From NCBI GenBank assembly GCA_964252035.1, contig CAXUOO010000113.1: a stretch of DNA of 54,943 bases, one strand, 5' to 3'. Below are positions 1,941 to 54,943 of this stretch, in pieces (within the stretch, counting starts at the first letter, position 1; the number at the start of each line of letters is the position of its first letter). The position numbers and the translations under genes were made by a program. The stretch is from Podarcis erhardii. Taxonomy: Eukaryota. Under the pieces are notes generated by a model. It worked only from the letters and a program-made list of their open reading frames with translations, searched no databases and was not told the DNA's origin.

Positions 1941-2297
1941 CAGCTTGAGCAATTTGACCAAAGAGGGCAAAAATACAGGCTGGAAGACTGGCAGACCAAG
2001 CTGTATGTAGCCCAGATGTCCGGGACAATCACTGCGACACCCACAAGTACCACATAAATCTCTACCGTCAAGGGTACCCAATCTTTTGTCGTAGAGGCCA
2101 CCGGCCACTGGCGGAGGAATACCAATCAAATGTGAAGACGCCTCTGTTGTCGCTGTTGAAGAATCCGTCACTTTTTCAAACACTTGTGCAGCTACGACTT
2201 TGCACGCGGAAATTGCTTGTATTTCCGCCGGGGAGTATACGTCAATACATGCGCTGTGCACTGCCGTGCAAATAACGCCATTTGCGTCATACATCAT
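1941..2297 (-). CDS. RPA1: RNA polymerase I largest subunit, first coding exon (partial gene)
   Basis: Translation MMYDANG...DVYSPAEIQAISACKV...GGLYDKRLGTLDGRDLCGTCGCRSDCPGHLGYIQLGLPVFQPVFLPSLVKLLKL carries the zinc-binding CxxC...CPGHxGxIxL motif of multisubunit RNAP largest subunits. GLYD and PV(F/Y)xP favour Pol I over Pol II/III. It ends at a phase-0 donor CTG|GTAGGT at 1940. The start at 2297 rather than 2393 is inferred from homology. Confidence 0.8.
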
Positions 2298-2589
2298 GCC
2301 GAAAAAGATAAAAGTGCGCAGAAAAAGGCACTCAACATTCGAACGCGATATGTAGTCGGAAAAGTCCAGCAAGGGTCTTTGTTTAGGGTTCAAAAGCTGG
2401 AAGAGTTAAACACAGCGTCGCATCACTCTCCATTAACAAATTGGCGTCGGCACAAAAGAGCATAGATTGAGCCACGGTGTCAATACGTATGCAAAGAAGT
2501 TTAATAAGAAGTTTGATTAAGGAGACACGCCTTCGATAAGGTAGTCCTACCGAGGATATTGAAAGAAGTTGCCGGCGCTTTTCAGCAAA
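2298..2589. promoter_or_regulatory. Candidate divergent (bidirectional) promoter region
   Basis: 292 bp between the RPA1 ATG (2297, minus) and a plus-strand ATG at 2590 in a GCAAAATG context (MSQAEAKATDPQ...). Inferred from layout only. Confidence 0.3.
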
Positions 2590-5122: not shown

Positions 5123-5159
<37 letters not shown>

Positions 5160-12905: not shown

Positions 12906-13506
12906 GCTAAGAATATGCATCTTGTATGGTTCTGCAGTAATCGTTGTTGTGTGTTCTCTAATCACGGCGTGTAGCAGATAAGTGTTGAATTCGTACTTTT
13001 CTGCAAGTAGTAGACATTTCGAATTGCTCACAGTGATTTGTGTGGATAAGCTTGGCAGTGGGCCTGAGATTACAGCTGCATTTCTCTCACTACCTGCTTT
13101 TTCAGGTATATTCACTGTCGACGACGCCAATCAGACAGCAGCAACAAACGTTTTTTCTGTGAGCACACAACTCTCCAGAGCCATTGTGTGCCAGAAGCTC
13201 CACGGAAGATCCTGAACGAAATTCTAGGAAGTGAAGTTGAGGTTTTTGTGGACATTTGAGTACAAGTTCCCATAATGTATAGAGCTATCACTTCGCTGCT
13301 TCAGTGGCAAAGTGGACAGGACGAACAGAAGACTACTTTAAGTGTGCTATGTGATTGCCACTCCCTTGACTATTGCAAAACCTTACGCCACGTCTATATA
13401 GCTGGATATTATACCAAATTTCACACGCTTTCGAAGAAGAAGTAGAACGCACGATAGCTGCGCAAATGCTCAACTTTACCTGTATGCACAGAATTTTGCA
13501 TGCAAG

Positions 13507-13542
13507 TATACATATATATACAATATATATATATATATATAT
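13507..13542. repeat. (TA)n microsatellite
   Basis: Direct reading. Confidence 0.9.
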
Positions 13543-13547
13543 TTTGT

Positions 13548-15130
13548 AGAGGAAGGGAAGAAGAAAGATGTCTACATGGGAGAGGAAGATTATAGAAACG
13601 AACGAAACGGAAGAAAATATTGAAAAAAACGGAAAACGGGGGAAATAGAGGAAAGGAATAGTAGTAAGTGAAGAGGGAAGGTAGAGTGATGGATTGAAGA
13701 ACGTAGAGCAAACAGAATGAGACGGTGTAAGAGGGATAGCAGAATAACGAGACAATGTAAAAAAGGGAGAAAAAAATGGACGAGAAGAAAACATGTTCTC
13801 AAGGAAGAGGCTGTAGAATAAAGAGTAAAAAAAAGGGAAAGAAGTAACCGGTGTATGAGGGAGAGAGTCAGTCGCTTTGTTTGAAACTTAAGCATATTTT
13901 CTTTCTCATGCACATTTAATCTTCACCATTCTGCTGTGTTCTACCACTTCTAAAAAGGGAGAGGAGGAAACGGTGTATGAGGAAAAAAGGAAATGACAGA
14001 ATCAGTGCTGGCGACAAAGAAGAGAACGGGTGAACAAGAGGACGGAACCAAGGATGAAGGCTCTGGGGAAAATAGGACATGAAAGGGAATCAAAGAGGAA
14101 GGGAATGATAAATTTGCGGAAGAGAAACGTGAAAACAATCTAGATTTGAAGGTCAACTAATGAGCTGACCTCGAAAGAAAAATGTCAGAGCGAACACTTG
14201 TAAAGAGAATTCGAGCGAAGTACAAGCTACGAGAGAAAGCATGTGTTGACACGGATATGAGTTAGTCGTCAGGAGAAAGAAAGGTATTTGAAAATCCGAA
14301 AGAAGTAGGAGTAAGAGCTCAAACCGTAATAAATGATGACGGACAAAAATAAGCATGGAGAATATAGTGGTAACAACCTGCTGTGGTACACTACGAACAA
14401 AGAAGCAAATAAACTATATGTGCGGATTTTCTTCATGAATTTTTGCATCTACGTCTGGATTTATATATGAGCCTGTGAATGGAAAATGATATGCTGATCA
14501 GTATTAGCTGAGGAAGCTATGCAGATAAACAGGAGAAAAACAAACCGTGGACAGCTATTGTTTTAGAGAATGCGCTGGACGAAAAAGAGAGACTAGACAA
14601 AGAAAAGCTTATCATGTAGTATACAGAGAAAAAGAGGAAGAAAGAAAAGGTCTTTAACCGAATACAAGAGCTTGTGTTCACGCGAAAATAAGCAGTGCAG
14701 AATCAAAAAGAATGTAGCCGATCGAAACGCAATCAGAATGCAAGAGAATACATATATGTATGTGTTATTTAATTGTATATATATAGCGAGGTTGTAGGTG
14801 GAGAATGATTATAAAAGAGGAAATATAAGTTGATGATTTGAAAATAGAGAAAGGGACGTTTAGGTGAATGTTATGCAGATATGAATATGAGAAGTAGAGA
14901 CAACACAATTCTGAAGAGAAACACCGAGTCAGGAGACTGACGAGGAGATGTGACGAATACTGGAAGGCGGAGCTAAGACGATTTCAATGTCTAGCGACTA
15001 ATTTTTGTTTGAGAGGTGCGCCTGGTATGAAAATGCGAAATTTTTTTCTACACACGAAAGAGAAAATCCAGGTGAGGCAGAAACGAAGGTAACAAGGTAT
15101 GTGGAATAAATAAAAAGTTGATAATGCAAG
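13548..15130. repeat. Purine-rich (GA-biased) low-complexity tract
   Basis: Strong A/G excess on the plus strand. The motif CGGTGTATGAGG recurs near 13849 and 13970. The plus frames I translated (about 13550-13950) contain scattered stops. Confidence 0.75.
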
Positions 15131-17540
15131 GAAAATTGCTTGGGTGCTGACGCAGGAAAGAGAAACATTTTTCGATTGCTCATTCACAAACAATACTCAC
15201 AACTCCTTCCGTACAGGTGTTTAGGCAACACAAGAAAAAAGCAATGATATGGAGGAAAGCGGGTCGAATCAGGCAAAGGGCTAGCGATGCCTGCAAACGC
15301 TTTGAACAGTGTGTGTATAAAGGTAGACAACCAAAAGCAAGTACAGTGGAACAGACCTTTACCTGTTTCTAAGGTTGCATATATACATAAAAATATACAA
15401 ATGCACTCCAACTTTTAATCATCAAGATAATTATGCAAAATACTGATTTTTGCTTTCGTGGACTGCCAGTCGCCTTGAGGATTTTGGCGGGAACATGGCC
15501 TCTTCAGTTAAACCGAGTGCGTACACACAATAGAACAGGTCATGTTCCCATGTTGAGTGCCGTGTGTTACCGAATCTCGCGAATACCCAGCTGTGAGATG
15601 TAGCAGAAATTTTAGCTTGACATGCCCATGCTATCTGTTCAGCTTCGAGTTTGTGAGCGGCCAATCTGATTGTGAATTAGGAGTGCAATGCGAAAGGAGC
15701 AATTTAAAGAGCTGTATTGGAGATGTTTGATACCGGTGAATAAAATATCTGAAATATACTCAAACTACATGAAAGGGGTGGTATAAAAATTTAAGTGCCA
15801 CAACATGGAGCGAAAATCTGTGTAGCGCGGTCCTCAAGTGCCTCCCTGGCAAAAAATGTGAATTAAGGGGATCGTTGCACTTTTCCGGCGAATGTGAGAC
15901 ATTTGTCCTTAGCGCTGGTTTAGAATGCGTCTACCACTTCGGCTACAGCAGCGGCACCGACGACAGAGTGTAACGATTGAAGTGAAGCAGTTTTAGTTGC
16001 TAAAGCGACGATGTTTATCTAAAAAAGTTCTTTCTGGCAACAGGGCATCATTGGAACCACGGCCCATTTGCACATGCGTAAGCACGCAGAGCGTGCGCAT
16101 TTGCTGGAAAGTGTGCGTCAGCACGTTTTTTAAACTAAAGATCCTTACATATGTTTCAACAGGTTGTGCAAGTGGAAAGGCGATATGTATAAAAATTTGC
16201 TAATCTTGTGGCGTCCTGAAAATCGATTTTTTACCGCATTCATGCAACTCAGCGACAATCTCTGGTTCAAGTCATTTGTCCTGGTTCGTGCAGGTTGAAA
16301 GTAAGTGACTAGATGTGTGTAGCGCAACGCCTAGCACGAATAGGGACATATACTAGGCAGATAATATTCTGTATCGAACGAGCGGATACAATCAATTGAG
16401 AACTTAATCTATTGAACCCTGAACGAACAGCCTCTGCTACTGCGCAGATGAAGGGGAAAAAAGCAAGTTTGTAAGTATCGGCAGCGTGGCTCTCTCTAAC
16501 AGCGTGGGACATACCATAATGATAAGTAACTCAACAACCGGGACAGACCTGCTTATGGACCGCCACTTTCATGCAAGGAAAAATATTTGGATAGTAGATC
16601 AAACCTGCCCAGCTTGACAGATCTTCACTATATCGCTTTAGTAACCGCTGACCGCTTGAAACAGATTCTCTAAGTTCATAAGGAAAAAGTGTATACGCCT
16701 ACCGCTGCGTTCGGCATCTCCGTCTTGAACACGAGAGAGAGTTTTTGCCTTTATTTGAAAAAATCTACTATAGACTAAGGTCATGGGCAGTACTGTATGT
16801 AAAGCTCTGTGTATTACGGATCCAGAATGAACCGATAAAGCGCGATATGAAACAAACCTTTCTTAAATGCTGTAACCTATAGAAAGGTTAAAGTCTTTTC
16901 CCCATCAAAGACTAGTGGTTTGCATTGCGGCCGTGAGTGAATATTGGACTTCCTTCATGCATTCCATTACCGTACCTACCCTGCAGCTAGGGTCTAGCGT
17001 TCTTGCTGCAATTTTGATCATAAGCATGACGAGGAATGTTTCCATGTAATGCCTTTTTCATCAACGGTAAATTGATACTTCAACAATACTTCAAGCTTAA
17101 CATTCACGATAATGTTTTGTATTCACAGCTGTTGTTGTAAAGTTACGAAGGTCGTACCGTAAGTCAATCATAACGTCCAAGAAGAGGTAGGACAGCTATA
17201 TTATAGAAAACTGTGCTCCATTAAAAACAAAGAACATGTTCACTTTTGCTGCTACGTGCTCATAGCCGTTGTATTCAAGAATAATATTATAAATATTATG
17301 CTAGGCTCTCAGAACAGCAAATGAATTGTCTGAAATTTCGCTCAGCGTAGATTAGCATACACGTGCCACATTTTAGGAACACTGTATTGTAGTATATATG
17401 TCCACTTTAAATGATTGCTACATCTTCTTGCAGTAGAATCCGGTAGCACTTATGAAGTTGTATGAGTTCCTCACGCCTTGTGAGAAGAAACAATGTGGAA
17501 ACTGTTAATTAGCTTTTGAACTGAAGCTGCAGCGACGAAG

Positions 17541-17732
17541 ATGCCACTTTTTGCTCTTCTGTCGCTATGCTGAAAAATTCGAATGCGAGCGGTCAGAACC
17601 AATTTCTTTCAAGTGGGCGAATCTGGTGCAAAAATGTCACTTTTTGCTCTTCTCTCGCTTTTTTTTTTTTTTTTTTAAAAATTCGAATGCGAGCGGTCAG
17701 AACCTATTTCATTCAAGTGGGCAAATCTGGTG
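17541..17732. repeat. Two-copy tandem duplication (~93 bp unit) with a T-run expansion in copy 2
   Basis: ATGCCACTTTTTGCTCTTCT...AAAATTCGAATGCGAGCGGTCAGAACC...TTCAAGTGGGCGAATCTGGTG at 17541 recurs at 17634 with a few substitutions and a long poly-T. Confidence 0.9.
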
Positions 17733-24229: not shown

Positions 24230-27200
24230 TTTTGCAAGCCGGCGTTCAGTTTGACAGTTTAAGCAGCAAATTTGACTGTCAAACGAGTTGCCATGAGCAG
24301 ACAGAGGTGCTGCTGCAATCGGGTAGTTACAAGGGTTGCACAACAGCAATTTCAAACGTTTGCATTGTATAAAAGAATACGTTGTATTAGGTAGAGGCCA
24401 AACAATCGTGTAGCTGCGCATGGAGGTTACTCATCTCTACTCATTTGTGAGCGGACCTTTGAACTTAAATCAGCAGGTGAGCCGTGCAGCAGGGTCTCAA
24501 TAGTAAATATATCTGTGAAGTCATTACACAGCAGGAATTACTTCGCGTTACGAAGTAACTTTGAATCAAATTGTATACATCTTTATTACGATTATCCTGG
24601 TAAAGTTTGTATGCTAAAAAACATAGCGCTCAGGTACGGTTCAATATTTTTTTTAATCTCGCGTTACGTCCTCTTCAGGCTGCAAATCTGAATAATTTTT
24701 TAAAGGCTTGAGCCGTGCAGCATATTTTCGTTGTTTTTGGGTGTTTGTTAAGAAGCGCAAAACAATTTTTGAAGGCTCGTTCTAAACACCGAAAGGATTT
24801 TATGAGGTGAAAGCCGAAACTTTTTATTTATTTGTGCATGGTTCAATTTGTATGTCAGACTTCATTGTAGCGCTATGTAGAATGACATAGCACATTAGCC
24901 CCAAAGATCGCGAGGTCGAAGGCCCGCTACTATCAAGTAGTGAGAAGTGCACCAAGTTTCCGATGCTAGCGGTGTCTGTGTAGTCTCGTACAACAGCGAC
25001 TTTGAGACTGAGTAGATTGTATTACAAGAAAAAAAGCGGTGTATAATTCTTTGCATAACCTTTCTAATAGACTGTGTTTATCTGCCAGCAACTTGTTAGG
25101 CAGTAATATTATATCGTGTGGTGCATTATGTCCACTGCCTTGTTGAAGACATATCCAAGGTGACGAGCTGCGCCGGGTTTGATGTTTGCTGTATGTGTGA
25201 AGGATTGTGCAGCAGCACCTTAGTAAAGATTATTTTAAGTAAATAGAGTGCATTTATCAAAGCCAAATTTCTTCGTATTTTTGCTCGTTTTTCAGCAGAC
25301 TTCATTCAGTGCAGGTTTCAAAGTTGACGTTGGAAAAGTTTTAGATTTCTCAGAGCGCGTGCAGAGAGCGCTATTCAAGCTTTATTGAAACACTGTGATT
25401 CGTGCACCAGCAGAATTTATGAAAGATTGCACCGAAGCAACTTCAATGGCTCGCGTTGAGTAGGAGATAAATTTTGCTACACCGAACCCAGATGCTCAAC
25501 AACAGTGCGTGATCTGATCAGTTGCGTGTGGTTACAACCGAAGACAAAGCTATTATAAAGAATTATTTTTCTCCGAGCCGCAGCACCTCTATTGCAGGCC
25601 ATGAGGACTATTGTATACTTCAACGAAGTTAGCGGTGCAGTAAATTTCGGTTATCTGTGGACAGTTTCACAGCAACAACCGCAGAAGCTTGGGCTCAAAC
25701 ACATTAGTTAGTAGATCAAATAAGACAGCATATGGTATATCAAAAAGTGCATTATTTAAAAGGGTTTGGTTTTTTTTTTTTCGATCAGCATCAGAGCAAA
25801 GAGAAAGTATTTATCCATTTGGCTCGTTACTCGATCTGCGGGTTGTGCGGTCGATAGTAATCAGAGAGAGTACTTAATCATGGCTCGTTCTGCGGGCTGT
25901 GCGCTCGAATGTAAATTCTCAGAAAGTGAGACGCGCAACACATATATGGACACCCATGCACTCATGAAAGTTTACATAGCAGCAATTTCGACGGCTCAAA
26001 CTGTAAACTACACATTCTGCGTTACATGGAATCAATACGCTTTATATCATGCATTACTTGGCTAGTTGTCTTTTATCACAAGTGAAGACAACATCACAAT
26101 GCACTAAACGTACTGGTCAGTCAAGTTGCATTACCTTCATTTCAGGCTGCGCGGCCGAATTTGTTTATGTTAGGAAGATGAGCATGCAACATATTTTCAA
26201 GCAAAAAAGTGTCTGTGAAGGGTTTGCACAGCTGCCATTTTTACCTTTTTTGTTGTCAAATAGATGTACTGCTCTACATGGAAGTCGGAGTGCTATAGCA
26301 GCGCGTGTTGTGACTGCTTGGCTTGCTTACATATAGCTACAGCGGAAGGTATGAGTAATTATTCTCAATTTATCCCTCGCTTTTTGCAAGCCGCGCTTTT
26401 AAATCACTATTTCACGATAAGCCGCGCAACTAGTTTTCGGTGCCCGAATTAACTCTGAATGGTAGCACAGCAACAATTGTATAGGCTCGGGTCGAAAAGT
26501 CTGTTCCTTGTAGTTCAAAGACGACAGCCTTTGATAAATCAGTATGTTAATCAAATAGTATCGTTGGTTGATTTGAAGATTTTGCATTAGACTAGAGCTG
26601 CAAAACTTATTCTTACGGGGCGCTCTATGTACTGTGCGTTGTGCGGCCGGCCGTGTATTTTCAGAAAATAAGCCGCGAATTACATTTTGACCACCCCCAT
26701 ATCTGTGGAAGGTTGCACCGCAACAACCTCAAAGCGTCACATTGAAAAGTAACTACACTGCGGCACGGAAGTCGGATGCTGTACAACAGTGCATGATCTG
26801 GCTAATTGAATGTGGTTACAAGTGAACAGAGCACTAAGATAAAGTAGATATATTCTTTCCTTGCGCCGCAGCACGTCCATTGCAGGCTGTGCGGTCGAGT
26901 GTATAATTTTAAAATAAAAGGACGCGCAGCACATATTTGAACACCGCGTAATTAGCAGTTTCAAGGACTTGCAGACTACCTATCATTTGTTACATTGAAA
27001 GCATATCCTCTATAACCAGTGCTTAAATCGACAAATTGTATGACTTCACAGGTGACTGCAACATTAGAATATACTGAAAGTCTTTTTATGCAAGTCGCTG
27101 AATCTGTTTTTCTGACTGCGTCGTTGAACATATGTTTAAAGCAGATGATCGTCTTGCACATTTTCAAGCATCATAGTGTCTCATGAGGGTTGCACAGCAG

Positions 27201-29988
27201 CAGTTTTAGAGGACCGCATTGCGAAAAAATTGTGTTACATGAATGTCAGCTCTCTTGTGGCCCCGCGTATTTGTGTTCTGTTTATATATAATCACACCAT
27301 AAGATGGCAAGCATTTTTTTCCACGATGCAGTAGATCTGGTGAAGGCTGCGCCGTCGAGTGTATACTTTTACAAGGTGATTTTTGCAGCAGGTTTCGGCG
27401 CTCAGAGTAGAGGATAATGGTTGCACATCAACGAGTTTACTGGGTCGCGTGAATGCTGTTCGCCTGGTAGTTCATGGAAAAGTCCGTTCGATATATCGTT
27501 GAGTGTTTTATTTAGGAATGTGTGATTCTTTGCATGCACAAAATTGGGCTCAGGAAAAAGACACTTCCCTTACAGCGCGTTACGTGTAATGCAGGCTGTT
27601 CTCTCAATTGTATACAATCAGGAAGTGAGCCATGCTACCAGTTTTCGTTTTAAGAGGTAAATGTGAACGATTGCACAAAACCAAATTTTTATAGGCGCTT
27701 GTCAAAAAGTTTATTGCCAGTAGTTCAAAAAAGACAGCTTTAGATAAATCAATAGGTAGACCCTATAGTGTGTTGTTCTTGAAAGTTTTTTGCACTCGAC
27801 TAGAGAGGGAATATCTATATATCTTACGGTGCGTTACACATGATGTGGGCTGTGCTGTAGAATGTATATACTCAGAAAGAGATTCGCCAAGTATATTCTC
27901 GAATATCGCCCAGTGTATGGAAGGCTGAAAGCAGCAATTTCAAAACGGCACACGTTAAATTTATCTATTGTGTTACACGGCAGTATAAATTGCTGCAGCA
28001 AACCCGTTCTTGACTGCATGATTGTGCCCACATATCATAACAGCATAAATATAAAGTACAAAAATTTTCATTCAAAAGGGAATACATTTTTTGCATGCTG
28101 CCGTCGAGTGTATATGGTCAGGAGGTGAGCCGGTAGCAGGTCTTCGATGCTCAAAGTAGTTGTGAACGGTTGCACAAGGACAGTTGTACAGATGGTATTT
28201 CATGGAAAGTACCTTCTGATGTATTAGTATTGTTTCCAGTTAGAAATATCTCTATGTTTGCAAACAAAGCATCGAATACAGGGTGTAACCTCAAGGCACG
28301 TTACACGTAGTGCAGCTTGTACGGCCGAATGTGTACTTTTAGGAAATTAGCAGATAAGCTTTTTCTCGAACGTCGCCGTATCTACAGAGCGATGCGCAAC
28401 CTCAGTTTCAAATATCAGATTGTACACAAGGTACATGTGCAAATTGGATACCCGCGATGTACAGCAGTACGTGAATTGACGACAAGTGAATACAACGCAA
28501 GAAAAAACTGGGAGTAATCCTCATCGAGTGACAGTCCCTTGATTTTAGGCTGCGCGGACAAATGTAAATTTTTACCCGATATGCATACAGCACATTTTCG
28601 AGCCTCAAAGTAATTACAAGGGGTTGCACTCCAGAATTTTCAAACGCTCCCGTTGCAAACTAGATATACTGTGCTACACGGAAGTCTGAAGTGCTACTGC
28701 AGCACGTCGGTTGACTGCATGATCTTGCTTACATAATATCACATCGTAGAATCACGTTTTCATGGTGAGTACGTTTTTGCAGGCTGGTTTGTCGAGTGGT
28801 GAGCCGTGTTGTAAACGTGGGTGCTCGAAGTACTTGTGAACGGTTGCACAACGACAACTGTACAATCTCGCATTGAGCCCAACTTACCTGCTAGTTCCTG
28901 GAAGATAGAATCTGAATATTAGTATATATTTCATTCAAGAGTGTATCAATGTTTGCAAGCACAGCATCGTAAGAAGTGTGAATCCGTACGGCGCGTTGCA
29001 CGTGGTGCAGACTGTTCGGCGGAATGAGCAGATTCAGGAAGTGAGTCGAGAAGAAGATTCCCAAACCTCGCCTTATCTATTAAGGTTGCATCAGTTTCAA
29101 TGTGTCAGATGGCAAAGTAGATCTACTGTGCTATCTGGTTACCCGCGATATACAGCAGTACATGAATCGACAATTTGTATGTTTTTCCAAACTGAATTCA
29201 AGACAAGGAGACACTAGGTTTTCTTCTCATCATGTCTCAGTTCCTTCATTCAGGCTGCGCGGCAAAATGTATACTTTGAGCAGCTGATCAAGCAGCATTT
29301 TTTCCAAGTATTAATTGCACCAGGAGCTGCACGTCTGCGAATTCAGAGGCGCCCATTGCAAACTAAATATATGTGTTACACATGATTCTGAAGTGCTATC
29401 GCAGCGCGTGCGCTCTCTGTGTAAATTTCCCTGCACATTACCAAGGCATAAAAATAAAGAACGAGTAGATTCTTTAAGGATGCAATAAAATTTTCACAGG
29501 CTGCGCCGTCAAGTGTATGTACGTAGGAGGTGAGCCGTGCAGCAGATTCCCGGTGCTCGATGTATATGTGAACGGATGCACAGCAACAACTGTACGACCT
29601 CGCACTGAACGCTATAATCCTGCTGCTTCATGGATGCAAGCTGTGATTTATCAGTATCTGTTTCATTTGGGATGTATCTATGTTTGCATTCACAGTCATC
29701 AAAAAGTGTGTATTCTTGCGGCGCGTTCCAACTGCAGGTTGTGCGGTCGAATGTGTATTTTTTGGAAGTGAGCCGGGATGATCTTTTCGAACATTCTTCG
29801 TATCTACGAAGGGTTGCACAGCATCGATTGTCAAGTGCTACATTATAAAGTAGATATACTGTGCTACTTAAATACCTATAAACATCTACAGCACTTCATG
29901 TTTGGAAATATTGTGATATTCATAAGCGACGACAACACAAGCTTAAAGTAGGAGTATTTACTTTTCACTAAGCCGCGAAACTCTCATT
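24230..29988. repeat. Left diverged monomeric/trimeric layer of the satellite
   Basis: Monomer heads near 25890, 26143, 26386, 26635, 26883, 27112, 27345, 27593, 27848, 28094, 28313, 28546, 28780, 29015, 29250, 29497 and 29735. Degeneracy increases leftwards. Confidence 0.85.
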
Positions 29989-32407
29989 TCAGGCTGTGCA
30001 ACCAAATGTACATCCTGACCATATGACGTGCAGCACATTGTCGCGCACAACAGTATTTTTTTAGGGCTGCATAGCAGCACATTCAAACGCTTTGTTTTCA
30101 ACCTAGACACACGGTGATACACGAAGTTAAGAACTCTATAGCAGCGCATGCTTTGAGTGTCTGATTATGCTTACTCAGCACAGCATAGAAATGATGTACG
30201 AGTTTTTTGCCTTAAAGTAGGAAAAATACTTCTCAGAGGCTTCTTCGTGGGCTGTACATTTCCAGGACGTAAGCTTCGCAGCCAGTATTTGGTGCCGAAC
30301 CTGTTTGTGGAAGTTTGCACAGCAACAACTGTATAACCTAGATTGAATTCTATTTATCTTATATTACATGGAAAATAGCATTTTATACACGTGTATGTAA
30401 ATCACTCAAGCATGTATATGTGTTCGCAAAAAAGCAATTTACTATAAAAAAGTGTTTTTTGTACGGAGCGTCGAATATAGTGCAGGCTAGGCCATCGATT
30501 GTGTATATGATCAGAAAGGGAGCCACGCAAGAGGGTTTCTGTGTCTGAGGCATCTATGCACAAATGATCGGCAGTTTTACAGCCTCGGTATGAAAGCCTA
30601 TAGACATTGATGACAGCATTTGACACAGCAGAACGTGAACCTTTTGGTAGCGACTGTCTGTGTGTGTGAAATTGCAGCGTGAGATTTACGAGAAAGCGTT
30701 GATTTTCACGGTGCGTTACTAGTAGTGCGAGTTGTGCGGTCGAATGCGCTTTTTAGAAAGTGAATCAGAGGACAAAATCCGTATTCATGAAGAGCTGCAC
30801 AGCAGCATTTTCAAGGCTTCCCATTGCAATGTATTTGTAGTGTGCTACACGGAATTCAAACGTGTTATAGCAGCTCGCATTTGCTAATTGCTTGATTGTG
30901 CCCACGTATAATCACAGCTCAGCAATGAAGTACGAGTATGGTACTTTACAATAAATTTTGTTTTCTTTCAGGCTGCTGTATCGACTGTATACTTCTAGAA
31001 AGTGAGGTTTGCATCAATGTTTTGGTGCTCGAAGTATTTGTGAACGTTTTCACGTGAAAACTTGCATTGGCTTGCGCTGAACTCTGGCTATATGGTAATG
31101 GAAGATCGCTTCAGTATAACAGTATATGTTTCATTCAAAACTGTATTTACGTTTGCAAGCATAGCATCAAAAGAATTGTGTATCGGTATGGCGCGCTTTA
31201 CGTAGATCAGACTGTATGTTCAAATGAGTATATTCAGGAAGTGAGCCGAGAAGCATATCTTCGTACGTCGCCGTATATACGGAGGGTTGCACAGCATCAG
31301 CTTCAAGTGTCAGATTGTAAACAACATATGCTGTGCTACTTGGTAACCAGCAACATACAGCATTACATGGTTTGGAATATTTTATGTTTGCAGAGTTGAA
31401 TAAAGTACAAAGAGGAACTAAGAGTGCTTCTCATCAGGCTGGATCACTTTCGTTTCATGGTGTGCGACAAAATATATGTTTTGAACGGATAAGCGTGCAG
31501 CAATTTCCAATTTTTTAAGTGTTTGTATGGGGATGCACTTCAGCAATTTCAACCGCTCCCATTGCAAATTAGGACTATTGTGTCGTGCGCAAGTCAGAGA
31601 CGTACAGCAGCGCGTGCTTCAGCTGCGTGGCTGAAGTTACATATTTTCACATTATAAGGTTGAAACTCACGATGCAATACGTGTTTTGCAGGCTGCTCCA
31701 TCGAGTGTACAATCTGTAGAAGCAAGCTTTGTAGCAGGGTTTCGGCTGTGGATGTATCGTTGATCAGACGCACCGTAACAATGGTGTAGGCTCCCTTCAA
31801 TCACTGTCCTTCTGATGGTTCCTGGAGGAGACGGCACCTAATATATCAACTTTTGTTTCAAACATGTATTTGTATGTGGTTGCATCAAAACAAATGTGTA
31901 TTCTTACGGTGCGGTACACGTAGTGCAAAGCGTAGGTTCGGATGTATATGTCCAGCACAAGCATATTTTTGATTTTATTTATGAAAGATTGGACAGCAAT
32001 CTCGAAGTGTCACATTGCAAAGTAGATATACTGTGCCATGTGGATGTCAGATGATAAAAAAACAGAGTCTGCTTTGAGTACTCGAATATGTGTACAAGTG
32101 AACCCATACTAGAATGTAGTAGAAGTGACTTTTCTCACGCCGCAGCAGCTTCATTGCAGACTGTGCGATCCAGTGTGTATTCTCAGAACGTGAGCCACGC
32201 AACACGTCCTTGACATCGTCGTACTTATGGAAGGTTGCACAGCAGGAGTCTCAAGAGATTGCCTCGCATAGTAGATTTACTGCGTCACATACAATCCATA
32301 TGCACTAGAGCAGTGCATGAATCAACTAGTTGTCTGTTTTGATCAAAAAATACACACCACTATAACAAACTAAGACGAAGGCTCTTTCAAGTGGCATTAC
32401 TTTCATT
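29989..32407. repeat. Older, diverged copy of the 10-monomer HOR unit
   Basis: Colinear with the HOR unit monomer by monomer (e.g. 30483 corresponds to 32905, 31925 to 34328). Clearly more diverged than the core copies; identity rises near 32290-32350. Confidence 0.85.
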
Positions 32408-35400
32408 CAGGCTGCGTTTTTGATTGTATATTTTGAGCGAATGATAGTCTAGCACGTTTTCGAGCGTCACAGTCTCAGAGGAGAGTTGTCCAGCAGTAAT
32501 TTTAGACGCGCAAACTAGATGTATCGTGCTATGCGAATGTCAGAAGTGCTATAGCAGCGCTTGCTCTGACTGCCTGGTTGTGCTAACGTATATCCATACC
32601 ATGAGAATGAGCTGCCAGTTTTTCTTTCTCAAATGCAATATGTCTTTTGCATGCTGCGCCGTCGGCCTATATTCTAAAGCATTGAGCCGTGCATAGCAGA
32701 TTTTCGGTGCACGAATTCTCTGTGAACGCTTACAAAGCAACAACTGTGTAAGCACTGCTGCAAACTATGTATCTGATATTCCGTCGAAAGTACCTATTTA
32801 TATACAAGTACGTAGATGATTCAAGAATGTCTACGTGTTTGCAAACACAGAAGTTTACTTACAAAAAGTGTTTTTCGTACGGGAAGAGGTCGTCAAATAA
32901 ACTGCAGGCTGTGTGTCATCGAATCTGTATATGACCAGGAAGTGAGCCATGCAGCGGGGTTTCCCTGTTCAAGAAATTTATGAACGGATGCACAACAGCA
33001 GTTGTAGAGCCTTGGGATGAAAATTATATAGCTCATAGTCATTGATGACAGCACTTGATATAGCAGAACGCTAATCGCATAGTAGTGAGTGTCTGTGTGT
33101 GTTTGAAACTGCAGCGTGAGATTAGAGAAAACGCGTGGATTTTCATGGCGCGTTACTAATAATGGGAGTAGTGCGGCCGAATGCACAGTTTTGGAAAGGG
33201 GTTCAGAAAACCAAAGCCGTATTTATGAAGGTCTGCAAGGCAGCATTTTCAAGGCGTCCCATTGCAATATAGGTAGAGTGTGTTCCACGGGATTCAAGCG
33301 TGTTACAGCAGCGCGCGTTTGCTGATTGCTTGATTGTGCCCACGTGTAAACACAGCTCAATAATGAAGTACGAGTATTGTTCTTTACAATGAACTTCGTA
33401 TACTCTCAGGCTGCTTTATCGAATGTATACTGCTAAAAATGAGCCTTGCATCAAAGTTTCGGTGCTTGAAGTATTTGTAAACATTTGCAGGGGAATTCTT
33501 GCCTTGGCGTGCATTGAACTCTGGTTATCTGATAGTTCATATAAATAGCATCTGGTGTATCAGTATATGAATCATACAAAACTGTATTTACGTTTGCAAG
33601 CATAGCATTGAAAGAATTGTGTACCGGTATGGAGCGCTAAATGTAAATCAAACTGGACGGTCGCGTATCTTTGTACGTCGCATATATACGGAGGGTTGCG
33701 CAGCATTAGCTTCAAGTATCAGATTGTAAACAACATATGCTGTGCTATTTGAGTACCAGCAATATACAGCTTATACGGTTAGACAAGTTGTATGTTTTGA
33801 ATGAAACAGTAGGAAAAGCTGAAAGTGCTTCTCATCAGACTGGATTACATTCATCTCGGGCTGCGGGACCAAATGCATATTCCTAACAGAAATGAATGAA
33901 GAAAATTTTGAGTTTCAACATGTTTTCACGGGATGCACTTCAGAAATTTCAGACGCTCTTTTCGCAAGCTAGGTCTACTTTTCTCATAGGTATTAGAACA
34001 GCGCATGCTTAGTTCTGCATCTCGGAGGTTACACATCCGAACAGCGTGAGAATGAAACGTACGATGAAATACGATATTTTTCAGGCTGTTCCGTGGAGTG
34101 TACATTCGCAGGAAGCCAGCCTTGGAGCATGGTGTCGTTCGTCGATGTATTTTCGATTGGCTGTATAGCAACAATTGTATAGGCTCGCTTTGAGCACTGT
34201 TTATCTGGTAGCTCATGGAGGGGATGGCATCGTATATATTACTACTTGTTTCATCTAAAATTGTATATGTTTCTGCAAGCAAAACATCAAAAAGAGCGTG
34301 TACTCTTACGGTGCCTTATGCGTAGTGGAAAGTGTGCGATCGGATGAGTAAATCCAGCACAAGCATATGTTTGATTATAATTGTGGAAGATTGAACAGCA
34401 ATCTCGAAGTGTCACATTGCAAAGAAGTTAACTGTGTCACCTGGATGTCAGATGCTTGAACAAAGTGCCTGTTTTGACTAACTGAATATGCTTACAAGTG
34501 AACCGGGTACTAAGGTGTAAAGCAGAAGTAGTTTTCTTCACGTCGCAGCATGTTCATTGCAGACTCTGCGATCCATTGTGTATTCTCAGGACGTGAGCTG
34601 CTCAGCACGTCTGTGACTCCGCGGTACTTGAGAAAGTTGCACAGCAGGAGTTTCAAGGGTTGCCTTGCATAGTAGATATACTGAGTTACATACAAGCCAT
34701 ACGCATTAGAGCAGTGCATGAATCAACTAATTGTCTCTTTTGATTAAGAAATACACACCACTATAACAAACTAAGACGAAGGCTCTTTCAAGTGGCATTA
34801 CTTTCATTCAGGCTGCGTTTTTGATTGTATATTTTGTGCAAATGATAGTCTAGCACGTTTTCGAGCTTCACAGTCTCAGAGGAGAGTTGTCCAGCAGTAA
34901 TTGTAGACGCGCAAACTAGATGTATCGTGCTATGCGAATGTCAGAAGTGCTATAGCAGCGCTTGCTCTGACTGCCTGGTTGTGCTAACGTATATCCATAC
35001 CATGAGAATGAGCTGCCAGTTTTTCTTTCGCAAATGCAATATGTCTTTTGCATGCTGCGCCGTCGGCCTATATTCTAAAGCATTGAGCCGTGCATAGCAG
35101 ATTTTCGGTGCACGAATTCTCTGTGAACGCTTACAAAGCAACAACTGTGTAAGCACTGCTGCAAACTATGTATCTGGTATTCCGTGGAAGGTACCACCTT
35201 ATATACAAGTACGTAGATCATTCAAGAATGTCTACGTGTTTGCAAACACAGAAGTTTACTAACAAAAAAGTGTTTTTCGAACGGGAAGAGGGCGTCAACT
35301 AAGCTGCAGGCTGTGTGCCGTCGAATCTGTCTATGACCAGCAAGTGAGCCATGCAGCGGGGTTTCCCTGTTCAAGAAATTTATGAACGGATGCACAACAG

Positions 35401-38400
35401 CAGTTGTAGAGCCTTGGGATGAAAACTATATAGCTTATAGTCATTGATGACAGCACTTGATATAGCAGAACGCTAATCGCTTAGTAGTGAGTGTCTGTGT
35501 GTGGTTGAAATTGCAGCGTGAGATTAGAGAGAACGCGTGGATTTTCATGGCGCGTTACTAATAATGGGAGTTGTGCGGCCGAATGCACAGTTTAGAAAGG
35601 GGTTCAGAAAACCAAAGCCGTATTTATGAAGGTCTGCAAAGCAGCATTTTCAAGGCGTCCCATTGCAATATAGGTAGAGTGCGTTCCACGGATTCAAGCG
35701 TGTTACAGCAGCGCGCGTCTGCTGATTGCTTGATTGTGCCCACGTGTAATCACAGCTCAATAATGAAGTACGAGTATTGTTCTTTACAATGAACTTCGTA
35801 TACTCTCAGGCTGCTTTATCGAATGTATACTGCTAGAAAATGAGCCTTGCATCAAAGTTTCGGTGCTTGAAGTATTTGTAAACATTTGCAGGAGAATTCT
35901 TGCATTGGCGTGCATTGAACTCTGGTTATCTGATAGTTCATATAAATAGCATCTGGTGTATCAGTATATGAATCATACAAAACTGTATTTACGTTTGCAA
36001 GCATAGCATTGAAAGAATTGTGTACCGGTATGGAGCGCTAAATGTAAATCAAACTGGACGGTCGCGTATCTTTGTACGTCGCATATATACGGAGGGTTGC
36101 GCAGGCATTAGCTTCAAGTATCAGATTGTAAACAACATATGCTGTGCTATTTGAGTACCAGCAATATACAGCTTATACGGTTAGACAAGTTGTATGTTTT
36201 GAATGAAACAGTAGGAAAAGCTGAAAGTGCTTCTCATCAGACTGGATTACATTCATCTCGGGCTGCGGGACCAAATGCATATTCCTAACAGAAATGAATG
36301 AAGAAAATTTTTAAGTTTCAACATGTTTGCACGGAATGCAGTTCAGAAATTTCAGACGCTCTTTTCGCAAGCTAGGTCTACTTTTCTCAAAGGTATTAGA
36401 GCAGCGCATGCTTAGTTCTGCATCTCGGAGGTTACACATCCGAACAGCGTGAGAATGAAACGTACGATGAAATACGATATTTTGCAGGCTGTTCCGTGGA
36501 GTGTACATTCGCAGGAAGCCAGCCTTGGAGCATGGTGTCGTTCGTCGATGTATTTTCGATTGGCTGTATAGCAACAATTGTATAGGCTCGCTTTGAGCAC
36601 TGTTTATCTGGTAGCTCATGGAGGGGATGGCATCGTATATATTACTACTTGTTTCATCTAAAATTGTATATGTTTCTGCAAGCAAAACATCAAAAAGAGC
36701 GTGTACTCTTACGGCGCCTTATGCGTAGTGGAAAGTGTGCGATCGGATGAGTAAATCCAGCACAAGCATATGTTTGATTATAATTGTGGAAGATTGAACA
36801 GCAATCTCGAAGTGTCACATTGCAAAGAAGTTAACTGTGTCACCTGGATGTCAGATGCTTGAACAAAGTGCCTGTTTTGACTAATTGAATATGCTTACAA
36901 GTGAACCGGGTACTAAGGTGTAAAAGCAGAAGTAGTTTTCTTCACGTCGCAGCATGTTCATTGCAGACTCTGCGATCCATTGTGTATTCTCAGGACGTGA
37001 GCTGCTCAGCACGTCTGTGACTCCGCGGTACTTGAGAAAGTTGCACAGCAGGAGTTTCAAGGGTTGCCTTGCATAGTAGATATACTGAGTTACATACAAG
37101 CCATACGCATTAGAGCAGTGCATGAATCAACTAATTGTCTCTTTTGATTAAGAAATACACACCACTATAACAAACTAAGACGAAGGCTCTTTCAAGTGGC
37201 ATTACTTTCATTCAGGCTGCGTTTTTGATTGTATATTTTGTGCGAATGATAGTCTAGCACGTTTTCGAGCTTCACAGTCTCAGAGGAGAGTTGTCCAGCA
37301 GTAATTGTAGACGCGCAAACTAGATGTATCGAGCTATGCGAATGTCAGAAGTACTAAAGCAGCGCTTGCTCTGACTGCCTGGTTGTGCTAACGTATATCC
37401 ATACCATGAGAATGAGCTGCCAGTTTTTCTTTCGCAAATGCAATATGTCTTTTGCATGCTGCGCCGTCGGCCTATATTCTAAAGCATTGAGCCGTGCATA
37501 GCAGATTTTCGGTGCACGAATTCTCTGTGAACGCTTACAAAGCAACAACTGTGTAAGCACTGCTGCAAACTATGTATCTGGTATTCCGTGGAAGGTACCA
37601 CTTTATATACAAGTACGTAGATGATTCAAGAATGTCTACGTGTTTGCAAACACAGAAGTTTACTAACAAAAAAGTGTTTTTCGAACGGGAAGAGGTCGTC
37701 AACTAAGCTGCAGGCTGTGTGTCATCGAATCTGTCTATGATCAGCAAGTGAGCCATGCAGCGGGGTTTCCCTGTTCAAGAATTTATGAACGGATGCACAA
37801 CAGCAGTTGTAGAGCCTTGGGATGAAAACTATATAGCTTATAGTCATTGATGACAGCACTTGATATAGCAGAACGCTAATCGTTTAGTAGTGAGTGTCTG
37901 TGTGTGTTTGAAATTGCAGCATGAGATTAGAGAGAACGCGTGGATTTTTCATGGCGCGTTACTAATAATGGGAGTTGTGCGGCCGAATGCACAGTTTTAG
38001 AAAGGGGTTCAGAAAACCAAAGCCGTATTTATGAAGGTCTGCAAGGCAGCATTTTCAAGGCGTCCCATTGCAATATAGGTAGAGTGCGTTCCACGGGATT
38101 CAAGCGTGTTACAGCAGCGCGCGTCTGCTGATTGCTTGATTGTGCCCACGTGTAATCACAGCTCAATAATGAAGTACGAGTATTGTTCTTTACAATGAAC
38201 TTCGTATACTCTCAGGCTGCTTTATCAAATGTATACTGCTAAAAAATGAGCCTTGCATCAAAGTTTCGGTGCTTGAAGTATTTGTAAACATTTGCAGGGG
38301 AATTCTTGCATTGGCGTGCATTGAACTCTGGTTATCTGATAGTTCATATAAATAGCATCTGGTGTATCAGTATATGAATCATACAAAACTGTATTTACGT

Positions 38401-50400: not shown

Positions 50401-53130
50401 CATTGAAAGAATTGTGTACCGGTATGGAGCGCTAAATGTGAATCAAACTGGACGGTCGCGTATCTTTGTACGTCGCATATATACGGAGGGTTGCGCAGCA
50501 TTAGCTTCAAGTATCAGATTGTAAACAACATATGCTGAGCTATTTGAGTACCAGCAATATACAGCTTATACGGTTAGACAAGTTGTATGTTTTGAATGAA
50601 ACAGTAGGAAAAGCTGAAAGTGCTTCTCATCAGACTGGATTACATTCATCTCGGGCTGCGGGACCAAATGCATATTCCTAACAGAAATGAATGAAGAAAA
50701 TTTTTAAGTTTCAACATGTTTGCACGGTATGCAGTTCAGAAATTTCAGACGCTCTTTTCGCAAGCTAGGTCTACTTTTCTCAAAGGTATTAGAGCAGCGC
50801 ATGCTTAGTTCTGCATCTCGGAGGTTACACATCCGAACAGCGTGAGAATGAAACGTACGATGAAATACGATATTTTTCAGGCTGTTCCGTGGAGTGTACA
50901 TTCGCAGGAAGCCAGCCTTGGAGCATGGTGTCCGTTCGCCGATGTATTTTCGATTGGCTGTATAGCAACAATTGTATAGGCTCGCTTTGAGCACTGTTTA
51001 TCTGGTAGCTCATGGAGGGGATGGCATCGTATATATTACTACTTGTTTCATCTAAAATTGTATATGTTTCTGCAAGCAAAACATCAAAAAGAGCGTGTAC
51101 TCTTACGGCGCCTTATGCGTAGTGGAAAGTGTGCGATCGGACGAGTAAATCCAGCACAAGCATATGTTTGATTATAATTGTGGAAGATTGAACAGCAATC
51201 TCGAAGTGTCACATTGCAAAGAAGTTAACTGTGTCACCTGGATGTCAGATGCTTGAACAAAGTGCCTGTTTTGACTAATTGAATATGCTTACAAGTGAAC
51301 CGGGTACTAAGGTGTAAAGCAGAAGTAGTTTTCTTCACGTCGCAGCATGTTCATTGCAGACTCTGCGATCCATTGTGTATTCTCAGGACGTGAGCTGCTC
51401 AGCACGTCTGTGACTCCGCGGTACTTAAGAAAGGTTGCACAGCAGGAGTTTCAAGGGTTGCCTTGCATAGTAGATATACTGAGTTACATACAAGCCATAC
51501 GCATTAGAGCAGTGCATGAATCAACTAATTGTCTCTTTTGATTAAGAAATACACACCACTATAACAAACTAAGACGAAGGCTCTTTCAAGTGGCATTACT
51601 TTCATTCAGGCTGCGTTTTTGATTGTATATTTTGTGCGAATGATAGTCTAGCACGTTTTCGAGCTTCACAGTCTCAGAGGAGAGTTGTCCAGCAGTAATT
51701 TTAGACGCGCAAACTAGATGTATCGTGCTATGCGAATGTCAGAAGTGCTATAGCAGCGCTTGCTCTGACTGCCTGGTTGTGCTAACGTATATCCATACCA
51801 TGAGAATGAGCTGCCAGTTTTTCTTTCGCAAATGCAATATGTCTTTTGCATGCTGCGCCGTCGGCCTATATTCTAAAGCATTGAGCCGTGCATAGCAGAT
51901 TTTCGGTGCACGAATTCTCTGTGAACGCTTACAAAGCAACAACTGTGTAAGCACTGCTGCAAACTATGTATCTGGTATTCCGTGGAAAGTACCTATTTAT
52001 ATACAAGTACGTAGATGATTCAAGAATGTCTACGTGTTTGCAAACACAGAAGTTTACTTACAAAAAGTGTTTTTCGTACGGGAAGAGGTCGTCAAATAAA
52101 CTGCAGGCTGTGTGCCGTCGAATCTGTCTATGACCAGGAAGTGAGCCATGCAGCGGGGTTTCCCTGTTCAAGAAATTTATGAACGGATGCACAACAGCAG
52201 TTGTAGAGCCTTGGGACGAAAACTATATAGCTTATAGTCATTGATGACAGCACTTGATATAGCAGAACGCTAATCGCATAGTAGTGAGTGTCTGTGTGTG
52301 TTTGAAATTGCAGCATGAGATTAGAGAGAACGCGTGGATTTTCATGGCGCGTTACTAATAATGGGAGTTGTGCGGTCGAATGCACAGTTTTAGAAAGGGG
52401 GTTCAGAAAACCAAAGCCGTATTTATGAAGGTCTGCAAAGCAGCATTTCCCAGGCGTCCCATTGCAATATAGGTATAATGTGTTCCACGGGATTCAAGCG
52501 TGTTACAGCAGCGCGCGTCTGCTGATTGCTTGATTGTGCCCACGTGTAATCACAGCTCAATAATAAAGTACGAGTATTGTTCTTTACGATGAACTTCGTA
52601 TACTCTCAGGCTGCTTTATCGAACGTATACTGTAAACAATTCAGCCTTGCATCAAAGTTTCGGTGCTTGAAGTATTTGTAAACATTTGCAGGGGAATTCT
52701 TGCATTGGCGTGCATTGAACTCTGGTTATCTGATAGTTCATATAAATAGCATCTGGTGTATCAGTATATGAATCATACAAAACTGTATTTAAGTTTGCAA
52801 GCATAGCATTAAAGGAATTGTGTACCGGTATGGAGCGCTAAATGTAAATCAAACTGGACGGTCGCGTATCTTTGTACGTCACGTATATACGGAGGGTTGC
52901 GCAGCATTAGCTTCAAGTATCAGATTGTAAACAACATATGCTGTGCTATTTGAATACCAGCAATATACAGCTTATATGGTTAGATAAGTTGTATGTTTTG
53001 AATGAAACAGTAGGAGAAACTAGGATTGCTTCTCATCAGGCTGGATTACATTCATCTTGGGCTGCGCGACCAAATGCAATTTCTAACAGAAATGAATGAA
53101 GAAAATTTTTGAGTTTCAACATGTTTGCAC
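32408..53130. repeat. Homogeneous ~2.4-kb higher-order repeat: 8 complete copies plus 1 partial
   Basis: Unit starts (CAGGCTGCGTTTTTGATTG) at 32408, 34809, 37213, 39616, 42023, 44420, 46809, 49199 and 51607, giving unit lengths 2401, 2404, 2403, 2407, 2397, 2389, 2390 and 2408. The ORF track independently shows the same 68-aa ORF nine times at this spacing. Confidence 0.98.
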
Positions 53131-54943
53131 GGGCTGCACTTAAGCAATTTTTGACGCTCGCATTGCAAGTCCACTGTATTACATGGATATCAGAGGTGCT
53201 ATAGCAGCGTGTGCTTCGACTGCGCGACTGTGCTTACAAAATCATCACAGCATAAGATTGAAATAAGAGTATTTTTTCAACAATGCAATACGTCGTTGCA
53301 CACTGGTCTATCGGATTTATACTTTCGGAACGCAAGCGTTGCAGCAGGGGCTCGGTGCTTAAAGTGTCTGTGAAGGTTGCACAGCAAAAATGGTACTGAC
53401 TCGCGTTGAACACTTTTTTTCGTGTAGTTCATGGTTGCTAGCATGCGTATATGCTTCATTCAGGCGTGTATGTTTGCAAGCACAGCGTCAAAATAAATGT
53501 GTATTTTGTAAGGCGCGTTACACGTGCAGGCTGTGCGGTCGAATGTGTATTTCCAGAAAGTTAATTAAGAATTTTTTTTCGATCATCGCCGTGTTTATGG
53601 CGGGTTGCACAGCATCAATTTTTTTTTTCAAGCGTCACATTTTAAAGTAGATATGTTGTGCTATTTGGATACCTAAGAAATTCTACAGCAGTACATGGTT
53701 TGGATTATTATAAATATTTCATAGGCGACGACAACACAAGCATAAACTAAGATTCCTTTCCTTTAAACTGCCACACTTTCATTTCTCATTAAGCTGAGGT
53801 ACTTTCATATCAGGCTGCGCAGCCAAATGCATATTCTGATCATATGACGTACAGCATATTTTCGAGCCCCAAAGTGTCTGCAAGGAATTGCAGACCAGCA
53901 ATATCCGAGGCTCCCATTGCAAACCAGATACATTGTGCTACGCTGAAGTCAGAGGTGCTATAACAGCTGAATAGGCTTGCGTTGAGCACTTCTCATCTGG
54001 TAGTTCGTGGAGAGGATGGCAACTGATGTAGGAAATATTTGTCTTAGCCAACAATGTATACGTGTTTGCAAGCAAAGCATCAAAAAATGTGTACGCTTAC
54101 GGCGCAATACATGTAGTGCAGGCTGTGCGATCGAATGTGGAACATTAGCATATGAGGCTTGAAGAATATTTTCGAACGTCGACGCATCTATTCGTGTTGT
54201 ACAAATGAAAATGCTACGCTGCAAAGTAGATACACTGTGCTACTTGGAAATCCACGTTATACAGCAGTACATGAATTGACAAATCATATGTTTTCAAAGT
54301 AAGTACAATACAAACATAAATTAGGAGCACTTCTCATCAAGCCGTATCATTTTCATTTCAGGCTGGGCGAATAAATGTGTAGTTTGAGCAAATGAGCATT
54401 CAGCAGCTCTTCAAGCCCTAACGTGTTTGCATGGGGTGGCACAGCCGCAGTTGTAGAACGCTTCCCGTGAAAGCTAGGTATATTGTGCTATATGAAAGTC
54501 ACAGCCGCTATAGCAGCGTGTGGTTTGCCTACGTGACTGTGCTTACATATTGTCACAGCATAAAATAAAGTACGAGTTTTTTTTCAACGATGCGATGCGC
54601 TTTTTGCAAGTTGGTTATTTTAGTTCAAGTTCTCAAGAGGTGAGCCGTGCACCGGGTTTTTAATGCTTGACGTATCTTAACATGACCGGCTGCATAGCAA
54701 AAATTGCACTGGCTCGCGTTGAGCACTATGTACTTGGTAGTTCATGGATGCTAGCATCTGACTTATTGATATGTGTTTGGTTCAGGAGTGTGTATGATAG
54801 CAAGCACAGCATCAAGAAAGTGGTGTATCCGTACGGCGCGTTACACGGAGCAAGCTGTGCAGTCGAATGCGAATATTCAGAAAGTGAGCCATGAAGCATG
54901 TTTTCGAACACCGCCGTCTTTGTGGAAGGTTTCACAACAGCAA
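53131..54943. repeat. Right diverged layer of the satellite (XYZ trimers)
   Basis: HOR identity is lost inside monomer 7 of copy 9. Heads continue near 53290 (Y), 53528 (Z), 53812 (X/Y chimera), 54119 (Z), 54358 (X), 54606 (Y) and 54850. Confidence 0.85.

Follow-up and report, generated by a model that had tools for sequence, protein, structure and literature searches.

Textbook accounts of satellite DNA include higher-order repeats (HORs), monomers of A and B types and arrays built in layers; the alpha satellite of primates consists of an AT-rich monomer of ~171 bp, with an identity between the monomers of one unit that is usually quoted as ~50-80%. Satellites are also known in coccidia, and the apicomplexan centromeres that have been studied, those of Plasmodium and Toxoplasma, are short and for the most part are not made of satellite arrays. 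The T. gondii satellites sat350 and sat240, the monomers of the latter being highly variable, have a mainly subtelomeric location, and close to the centromere of chromosome IV there is a satellite of 529 bp (PMC9498087, PMC8092015). PMC9498087, citing Clemente et al. 2004, presents sat240 and sat350/sat680 as subtelomeric satellites. In the account given in PMC8092015, the T. gondii B1 repeat is a 2.2-kb element of ~35 copies for which no internal monomer structure is reported, and both B1 and the 529-bp repeat are described as dynamic in copy number and as high-copy diagnostic targets. In our literature search on HORs in Apicomplexa, a clean coccidian decamer HOR with an intermediate trimer layer was not found described.

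In this study, we report the organization of a satellite array present in a stretch of 54,943 nucleotides (the window) from contig CAXUOO010000113.1 of the Podarcis erhardii assembly GCA_964252035.1. A first-pass annotation had proposed that a 2.4-kb unit located at 32408-34808 is a decamer of mutually diverged monomers of ~240 bp and forms a HOR. In the histogram of k-mer distances over the window, the dominant period was 2388-2408 bp, and the 2.4-kb periodic zone was confined to ~32.2-53.0 kb. Tiling with nhmmer profiles trained on the monomers of the first copy (32408-34808, 2401 bp) gave 128 monomers of ~240 bp between 24324 and 54942, all of them on the + strand, and no monomer match in the window upstream of 24.3 kb. 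The array is at least 30.7 kb in length and is cut by the window end. Its homogenised core, delimited by k-mer distances, tiling, identities and tree, occupies 32408-53055 on the + strand and comprises 8.6 units (eight complete 10-mers followed by a ninth represented by m1-m6), with the heads of m1 at 32408, 34809, 37213, 39616, 42023, 44420, 46809, 49199 and 51607. The full core units range from 2389 to 2408 bp and are not multiples of 3. The G+C content of the satellite is ~42%, and the GC skew on the + strand is constant at ~+0.1 over the whole array (24.3-54.9 kb), which simply follows from the base composition of monomers sharing one orientation.

The inner structure of the unit escaped the usual repeat detection. 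With default settings, the only TRF rows in the window were (AT)n tracts at other places, and none had a period of ~240 bp, ~720 bp or 2.4 kb; no row of these periods appeared either when the scores were relaxed and the maximum period was set to 2000. It had been anticipated that a repeat finder would return the 2.4-kb period alone, and the monomer was indeed missed by TRF. The peaks of base-level autocorrelation were weak, at 679/755 within the unit and at 244 across the core. A sensitive self-BLAST of 32408-34808 revealed five internal matches of ~60% identity (E 1e-19 to 9e-7) at offsets of ~677, 754, 1173, 1405 and 1432, which are consistent with the heads proposed in the first-pass annotation.

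The ten monomers of this first copy, all on the + strand, are m1 (32408-32649), m2 (32650-32904), m3 (32905-33164), m4 (33165-33406), m5 (33407-33649), m6 (33650-33857), m7 (33858-34081), m8 (34082-34327), m9 (34328-34559) and m10 (34560-34808). All the heads given in the first-pass annotation, from 32408 to 34560, were within 5 bp of the boundaries set by nhmmer and the profile HMM, and its lengths held as well (242, 255, 260, 242, 243, 208, 224, 246, 232 and 249 bp, the eighth having been given as 247), so that the monomers measure 208-260 bp. It must be considered that such a 2.4-kb unit could be a complex repeat without true monomers, in which the ~240-bp pattern arises from chance or from composition. 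The mean identity between monomers is just 48%, most pairs of an A-type with a B-type monomer are non-significant in pairwise comparison, TRF gave no 240-bp period and base-level autocorrelation is weak, all of which would agree with such an origin. Absence of significant alignment among the ten segments with respect to shuffled controls would have pointed in the same direction, but in pairwise local alignments against dinucleotide shuffles Z exceeded 3 in 19 of the 45 monomer pairs, with a maximum of 27.8. Two tight groups were formed by m2, m3, m5 and m8 (Z 7-28) and by m1, m4, m9 and m10 (Z 4-14), and m6 and m7 were weakly attached in pairwise comparison (Z 3.5-4.9).

Profile searches gave a more complete picture. 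When each monomer was sought with a profile of the other nine, all ten were recovered in register (E 6e-20 to 3.5e-3, calculated for a search space as large as the window). In addition, a profile constructed from 24 flank monomers, which included neither core monomers nor those of the diverged unit next to the core, gave exactly ten in-register matches on the + strand of the first copy (E 5e-29 to 8.5e-9), which started at most 7 bp from the proposed heads except for m6, matched from 33667 at model column 49. The two monomers with weak pairwise attachment were among those recovered by this flank-only profile, m6 with an E-value of 1.7e-14 and m7, the weakest pairwise member, with 8.5e-9 (6e-4 in the leave-one-out search). 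Moreover, the A and B profiles matched each other's monomers in register, and the reversed and block-shuffled controls of the window produced nothing with E<1 (best E=1.2). An origin by chance or composition is refuted by the leave-one-out searches, the controls and the flank-only profile, and we give it practically no credence. The homology of the ten segments and the reality of the ~240-bp monomer structure are therefore confirmed. Comparison of the first and second monomer halves revealed no sub-monomer repeat (mean Z 0.28). Conservation is uneven along the monomer, with 0.75-0.77 bits in the first ~120 columns vs. 0.54 bits in the last ~70.

With respect to divergence, identity between core units at the same monomer position ranged from 97.5 to 99.4%, while that between different positions within a unit was 35-62% (mean of 48%), as measured on the HMM-column alignment, which was used because global pairwise identities with cheap gaps were inflated to ~74%. 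The proposed contrast between near-identical monomers across units and diverged monomers within a unit was thus borne out, the ten monomers being unequally diverged from one another. Whole core units were 96.5-99.5% identical, the central units U5-U7 being the most alike (99.2-99.5%), and the adjacent units U6 and U7 have a private 13-bp deletion in common. The monomer phylogeny that had been suggested as a check was obtained with FastTree for all 128 monomers, and each of the ten positions was monophyletic with support of 0.78-1.0; the m10 clade also includes the monomer immediately to the left of the first copy. The repeat consists of head-to-tail monomers of common origin, is far more alike between units than between monomers, clusters by position and is non-coding. 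In attention to these identities and to the positional monophyly, its interpretation as a genuine decamer HOR satellite is supported, in an array that exceeds the 2.4-kb unit first annotated and extends from ~24.3 kb as far as the end of the window.

The monomers belong to three types (A, B1 and B2). Type A includes m2, m3, m5 and m8, assigned from pairwise Z, profiles and leave-one-out searches. Type B1, which follows an A monomer, includes m9 (pairwise Z, profiles, leave-one-out and tree) and m6, which is truncated at its head, its coverage of the monomer HMM being 35-250 in the tiling and 49-247 with the flank-only profile. Type B2, which precedes an A monomer, includes m1 (profiles, leave-one-out and tree), m4 (these plus pairwise Z) and m7, and m10 is separate, an extra monomer of B type between B1 and B2 that was placed by the same four lines of evidence as m4. 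The order of types in the decamer is B2 A A B2 A B1 B2 A B1 B. In the flanks, type and context agreed in 14 of 15 monomers (Fisher P=0.0014, although flank monomers are perhaps not fully independent of one another), and monomers of type A and of type B2 each formed a clade in the tree of 44 non-redundant monomers. The array reads mostly as A-B1-B2 trimers of ~720 bp, a pattern that explains the offsets of ~680-755 bp found in self-BLAST and autocorrelation. This prevalence of trimers indicates that the decamer is a later rearrangement of an older A-B1-B2 pattern.

The older layers lie on both sides of the core and in the same + orientation. The left flank proper (24324-29989) starts with the first recognisable monomer fragment at ~24324 and holds 23 diverged old monomers of ~240 bp, identified by nhmmer, mostly in A-B1-B2 order and with no 2.4-kb periodicity. 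Between this flank and the core, the next ten monomers (L24-L33, 29990-32407) form an older diverged 10-mer in the order m1 to m10, as indicated by the best core position of each monomer, by a register test (0.739 vs. at most 0.516 at other shifts) and by unit alignment. This unit is 75% identical overall to the core units, and the identity of its monomers increases in the direction of the core, from 0.59 to 0.88. The segment 27115-29496 was examined for another 10-mer of even greater age; the register signal was weak there (0.591 vs. 0.548) and is accounted for by the trimer pattern, and such a unit is therefore not claimed. The right flank (R120-R128, 53060-54943, cut by the window end), recognised from tiling, identities and register, opens with an m7-like monomer of 78% identity, the remainder being A-B1-B2. 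In each of the nine copies in the core, m6 is missing ~34-48 columns at the head of the monomer model, and its counterpart in the older 10-mer (L29, 31208-31456) is full-length, with HMM coverage of 1-247. The presence of this deletion throughout the core and its absence from the older copy at 31208 indicate that it originated a single time and was propagated together with the entire unit.

Regarding coding potential, no ORF of 120 or more amino acids was present in all units. A minus-strand ORF of 124 amino acids was open in four units only, at 36311-36685 (-) and at the corresponding position of three others, and had no Pfam match; it was therefore rejected as a gene and taken as a product of chance. 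Neither Rfam families, at the gathering threshold or at E≤1, nor tRNA genes were found in the repeat. The repeat is non-coding.

The contig provides information on the owner of the array. At 1929-2393 (-) there is a first exon of RPA1 (Pfam PF04997, E 8e-13), transcribed leftwards out of the window, and no further RPA1 exons were recognised in 1-1928 among the ORFs of at least 30 amino acids. In an exhaustive search of 1.84 billion representative proteins, the best match of this exon was the DNA-directed RNA polymerase I subunit RPA1 of T. gondii (57% identity, E 1.3e-36, aligned from residue 1), followed by RPA1 of Cryptosporidium (47-49%) and then by Colpodella. A word-based protein search with a length filter gave a single match, of 35%. 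Compared with vertebrate, yeast and archaeal subunits in the PDB, the exon was only ~40-50% identical, and such a low likeness to the vertebrate subunits indicates that it is not a lizard gene. The best match to T. gondii shows that the contig is apicomplexan and not lizard, and the array would belong to a coccidian-like apicomplexan closest to Toxoplasma, the array and the RPA1 exon being linked through the continuity of one contig.

The assembly is labelled as lizard and satellite arrays are prone to misassembly, so that a host satellite, from the lizard genome, or an artefact of assembly must also be considered. The apicomplexan RPA1 exon on the same contig argues against this, as does the distribution of the repeat among public data. 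The HOR unit was found in eight public runs belonging to five studies and carrying three organism labels, and within one study and under the same host label one run contained 0.76 of the unit words, while two contained 0.00, a value that is not proof of absence. Such patchy presence fits infection better than a host satellite. Contigs from other runs span m5 to m10 followed by m1-m2 across the unit border, as well as m3-m7 at 96% identity, and they also align to segments of the old left copy with ~99% identity; these independent contigs, with four to seven monomers in order, show that the locus is real and reproducible. Furthermore, the copies differ by 0.5-3.5% and carry indels of their own, and hence do not represent one collapsed duplicate. 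A lizard or artefactual origin is consequently very improbable. A parasite is not mentioned in one genome note on a wall lizard. In low-depth contigs of run X3, one join (32247/34442) skips 2194 bp and another (33958/32537) goes back 1422 bp with 27 unrelated letters in between; they could reflect either structural variation within the array or noise in the assembly.

The region that separates the RPA1 exon from the array (2400-24300, ~22 kb) contained no Pfam-recognisable ORF among those tested. Six (AT)n microsatellites were located in it, at 5123, 6489, 7222, 7577, 12868 and 13507. From ~13300 to 16000 the + strand is strongly purine-rich, with a GC skew of 0.24 and an AT skew of 0.21 in 14001-16000, and the minus-strand ORFs of this segment translate into low-complexity peptides rich in S, F, P and L. 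In addition, a 56-nt direct repeat occurs at 17573-17628 and 17677-17732, with copies that are 95% identical and 104 bp apart.

The chromosomal position of the array can be considered in the light of these surroundings. It could be a subtelomeric satellite, the counterpart of sat240 and sat350 of Toxoplasma, acting as filler that forms heterochromatin and separates the first housekeeping genes from the telomere. T. gondii subtelomeres carry the ~240-bp sat240, with highly variable monomers, together with sat350 (PMC9498087), and the monomers described here have the same length and variability; the 22 kb from RPA1 to the array, in which no tested ORF was recognised by Pfam, and the end of the contig inside the array are also in line with such a location. 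Against it, the telomere repeat TTTAGGG was not present in the window, although the contig ends inside the array, and RPA1 is absent from the lists of T. gondii subtelomeric genes (PMC9498087). A subtelomeric location is possible and can be proposed tentatively.

Alternatively, the array could be the centromere, or the centromere core, of a parasite chromosome, in which the HOR core would carry CenH3 nucleosomes and the decayed flanks would be pericentromere, as in primates and many plants. A homogeneous HOR core bordered on both sides by older, diverged monomers of one orientation follows the pattern of satellite centromeres, the greater conservation of the first part of the monomer is compatible with it, and the 529-bp satellite of T. 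gondii does lie in the centromere region of chromosome IV (PMC9498087). However, the array is seen only over at least 30.7 kb, HORs also occur outside centromeres, and the T. gondii centromeres defined by CenH3-ChIP are not otherwise described as satellite arrays, the satellites of this species being mainly subtelomeric (PMC9498087, PMC8092015). It is therefore unlikely that the array is a centromere, and the more specific proposal, that the HOR core marks a regional satellite-based centromere of a coccidian chromosome, layered in the animal or plant style, is equally unlikely. The remaining probability, once the tentative subtelomeric and the unlikely centromeric locations have received their share, corresponds to other heterochromatic or interstitial sites.

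Considering all of the above, the array is very probably non-coding satellite DNA of a coccidian-like apicomplexan, closest to Toxoplasma, which was co-assembled with the wall lizard and was layered by unit-wise exchange. The monomer homology is directly observed, and the ancestral state would have been an ancient array of ~240-bp monomers in one orientation, which diversified into three types and into ~720-bp A-B1-B2 trimers. Later, a block of ten consecutive monomers (2.4 kb) would have become the unit of amplification and homogenisation, the 10-mer register and the positional clustering being likewise seen directly. The mechanism suggested by this pattern is unequal exchange between sister chromatids or homologues, together with gene conversion, in 2.4-kb register. 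Such in-register exchange would spread new mutations unit by unit, as might have happened with the m6 deletion, which is observed as fixed across units, and it would make monomers of the same position ~98% identical while neighbours retain their old divergence of ~50%. The edges of the array would take part less in exchange and would decay, which would result in layered flanks and could have produced the divergence gradient that is observed. We infer that the DNA of the array is heterochromatic.

This locus offers a base-by-base record of a three-level satellite (240-bp monomer, ~720-bp trimer and 2.4-kb decamer) in what would be an uncultured coccidian that came to light solely as a by-product of sequencing a lizard genome. 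The m6 head deletion, fixed in the core and absent in the older copy, indicates that whole units evolve in concert in this group. Both inner layers were missed by standard repeat finders, and such structures are therefore probably under-reported in protist genomes. From a practical point of view, a parasite-specific multi-copy repeat of 2.4 kb is the sort of target used for sensitive PCR detection, as in the case of B1 and the 529-bp repeat of Toxoplasma. If the array were centromeric, the picture of apicomplexan centromeres would change.

In comparison with the known systems, the array resembles the HORs of primate alpha satellite in that homogenisation acts on a multi-monomer unit in its entirety, monomers group according to their position, types alternate in one orientation and homogeneity falls from the core to the edges, beyond which lie older, diverged layers. 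It is not itself alpha satellite, given that its monomer is ~240 bp (208-260 bp) instead of 171 bp, its sequence is unrelated, its G+C content is ~42% and its owner would be an apicomplexan. Moreover, the monomers within a unit are more diverged here (35-62% identical), an intermediate trimer layer is present, the array is seen over tens of kb instead of Mb, and it is a candidate at most for a centromere role. Unlike sat240 and sat350/sat680 of T. gondii, it is accompanied by no telomere repeat in this window. The likeness to sat240, as far as its description goes, consists of a coccidian owner, highly variable ~240-bp monomers, absence of coding function and adjacency to gene-poor DNA. Finally, it shares with the B1 and 529-bp repeats of T. 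gondii, again as far as description goes, the condition of a single-locus, kilobase-scale, non-coding coccidian tandem array.
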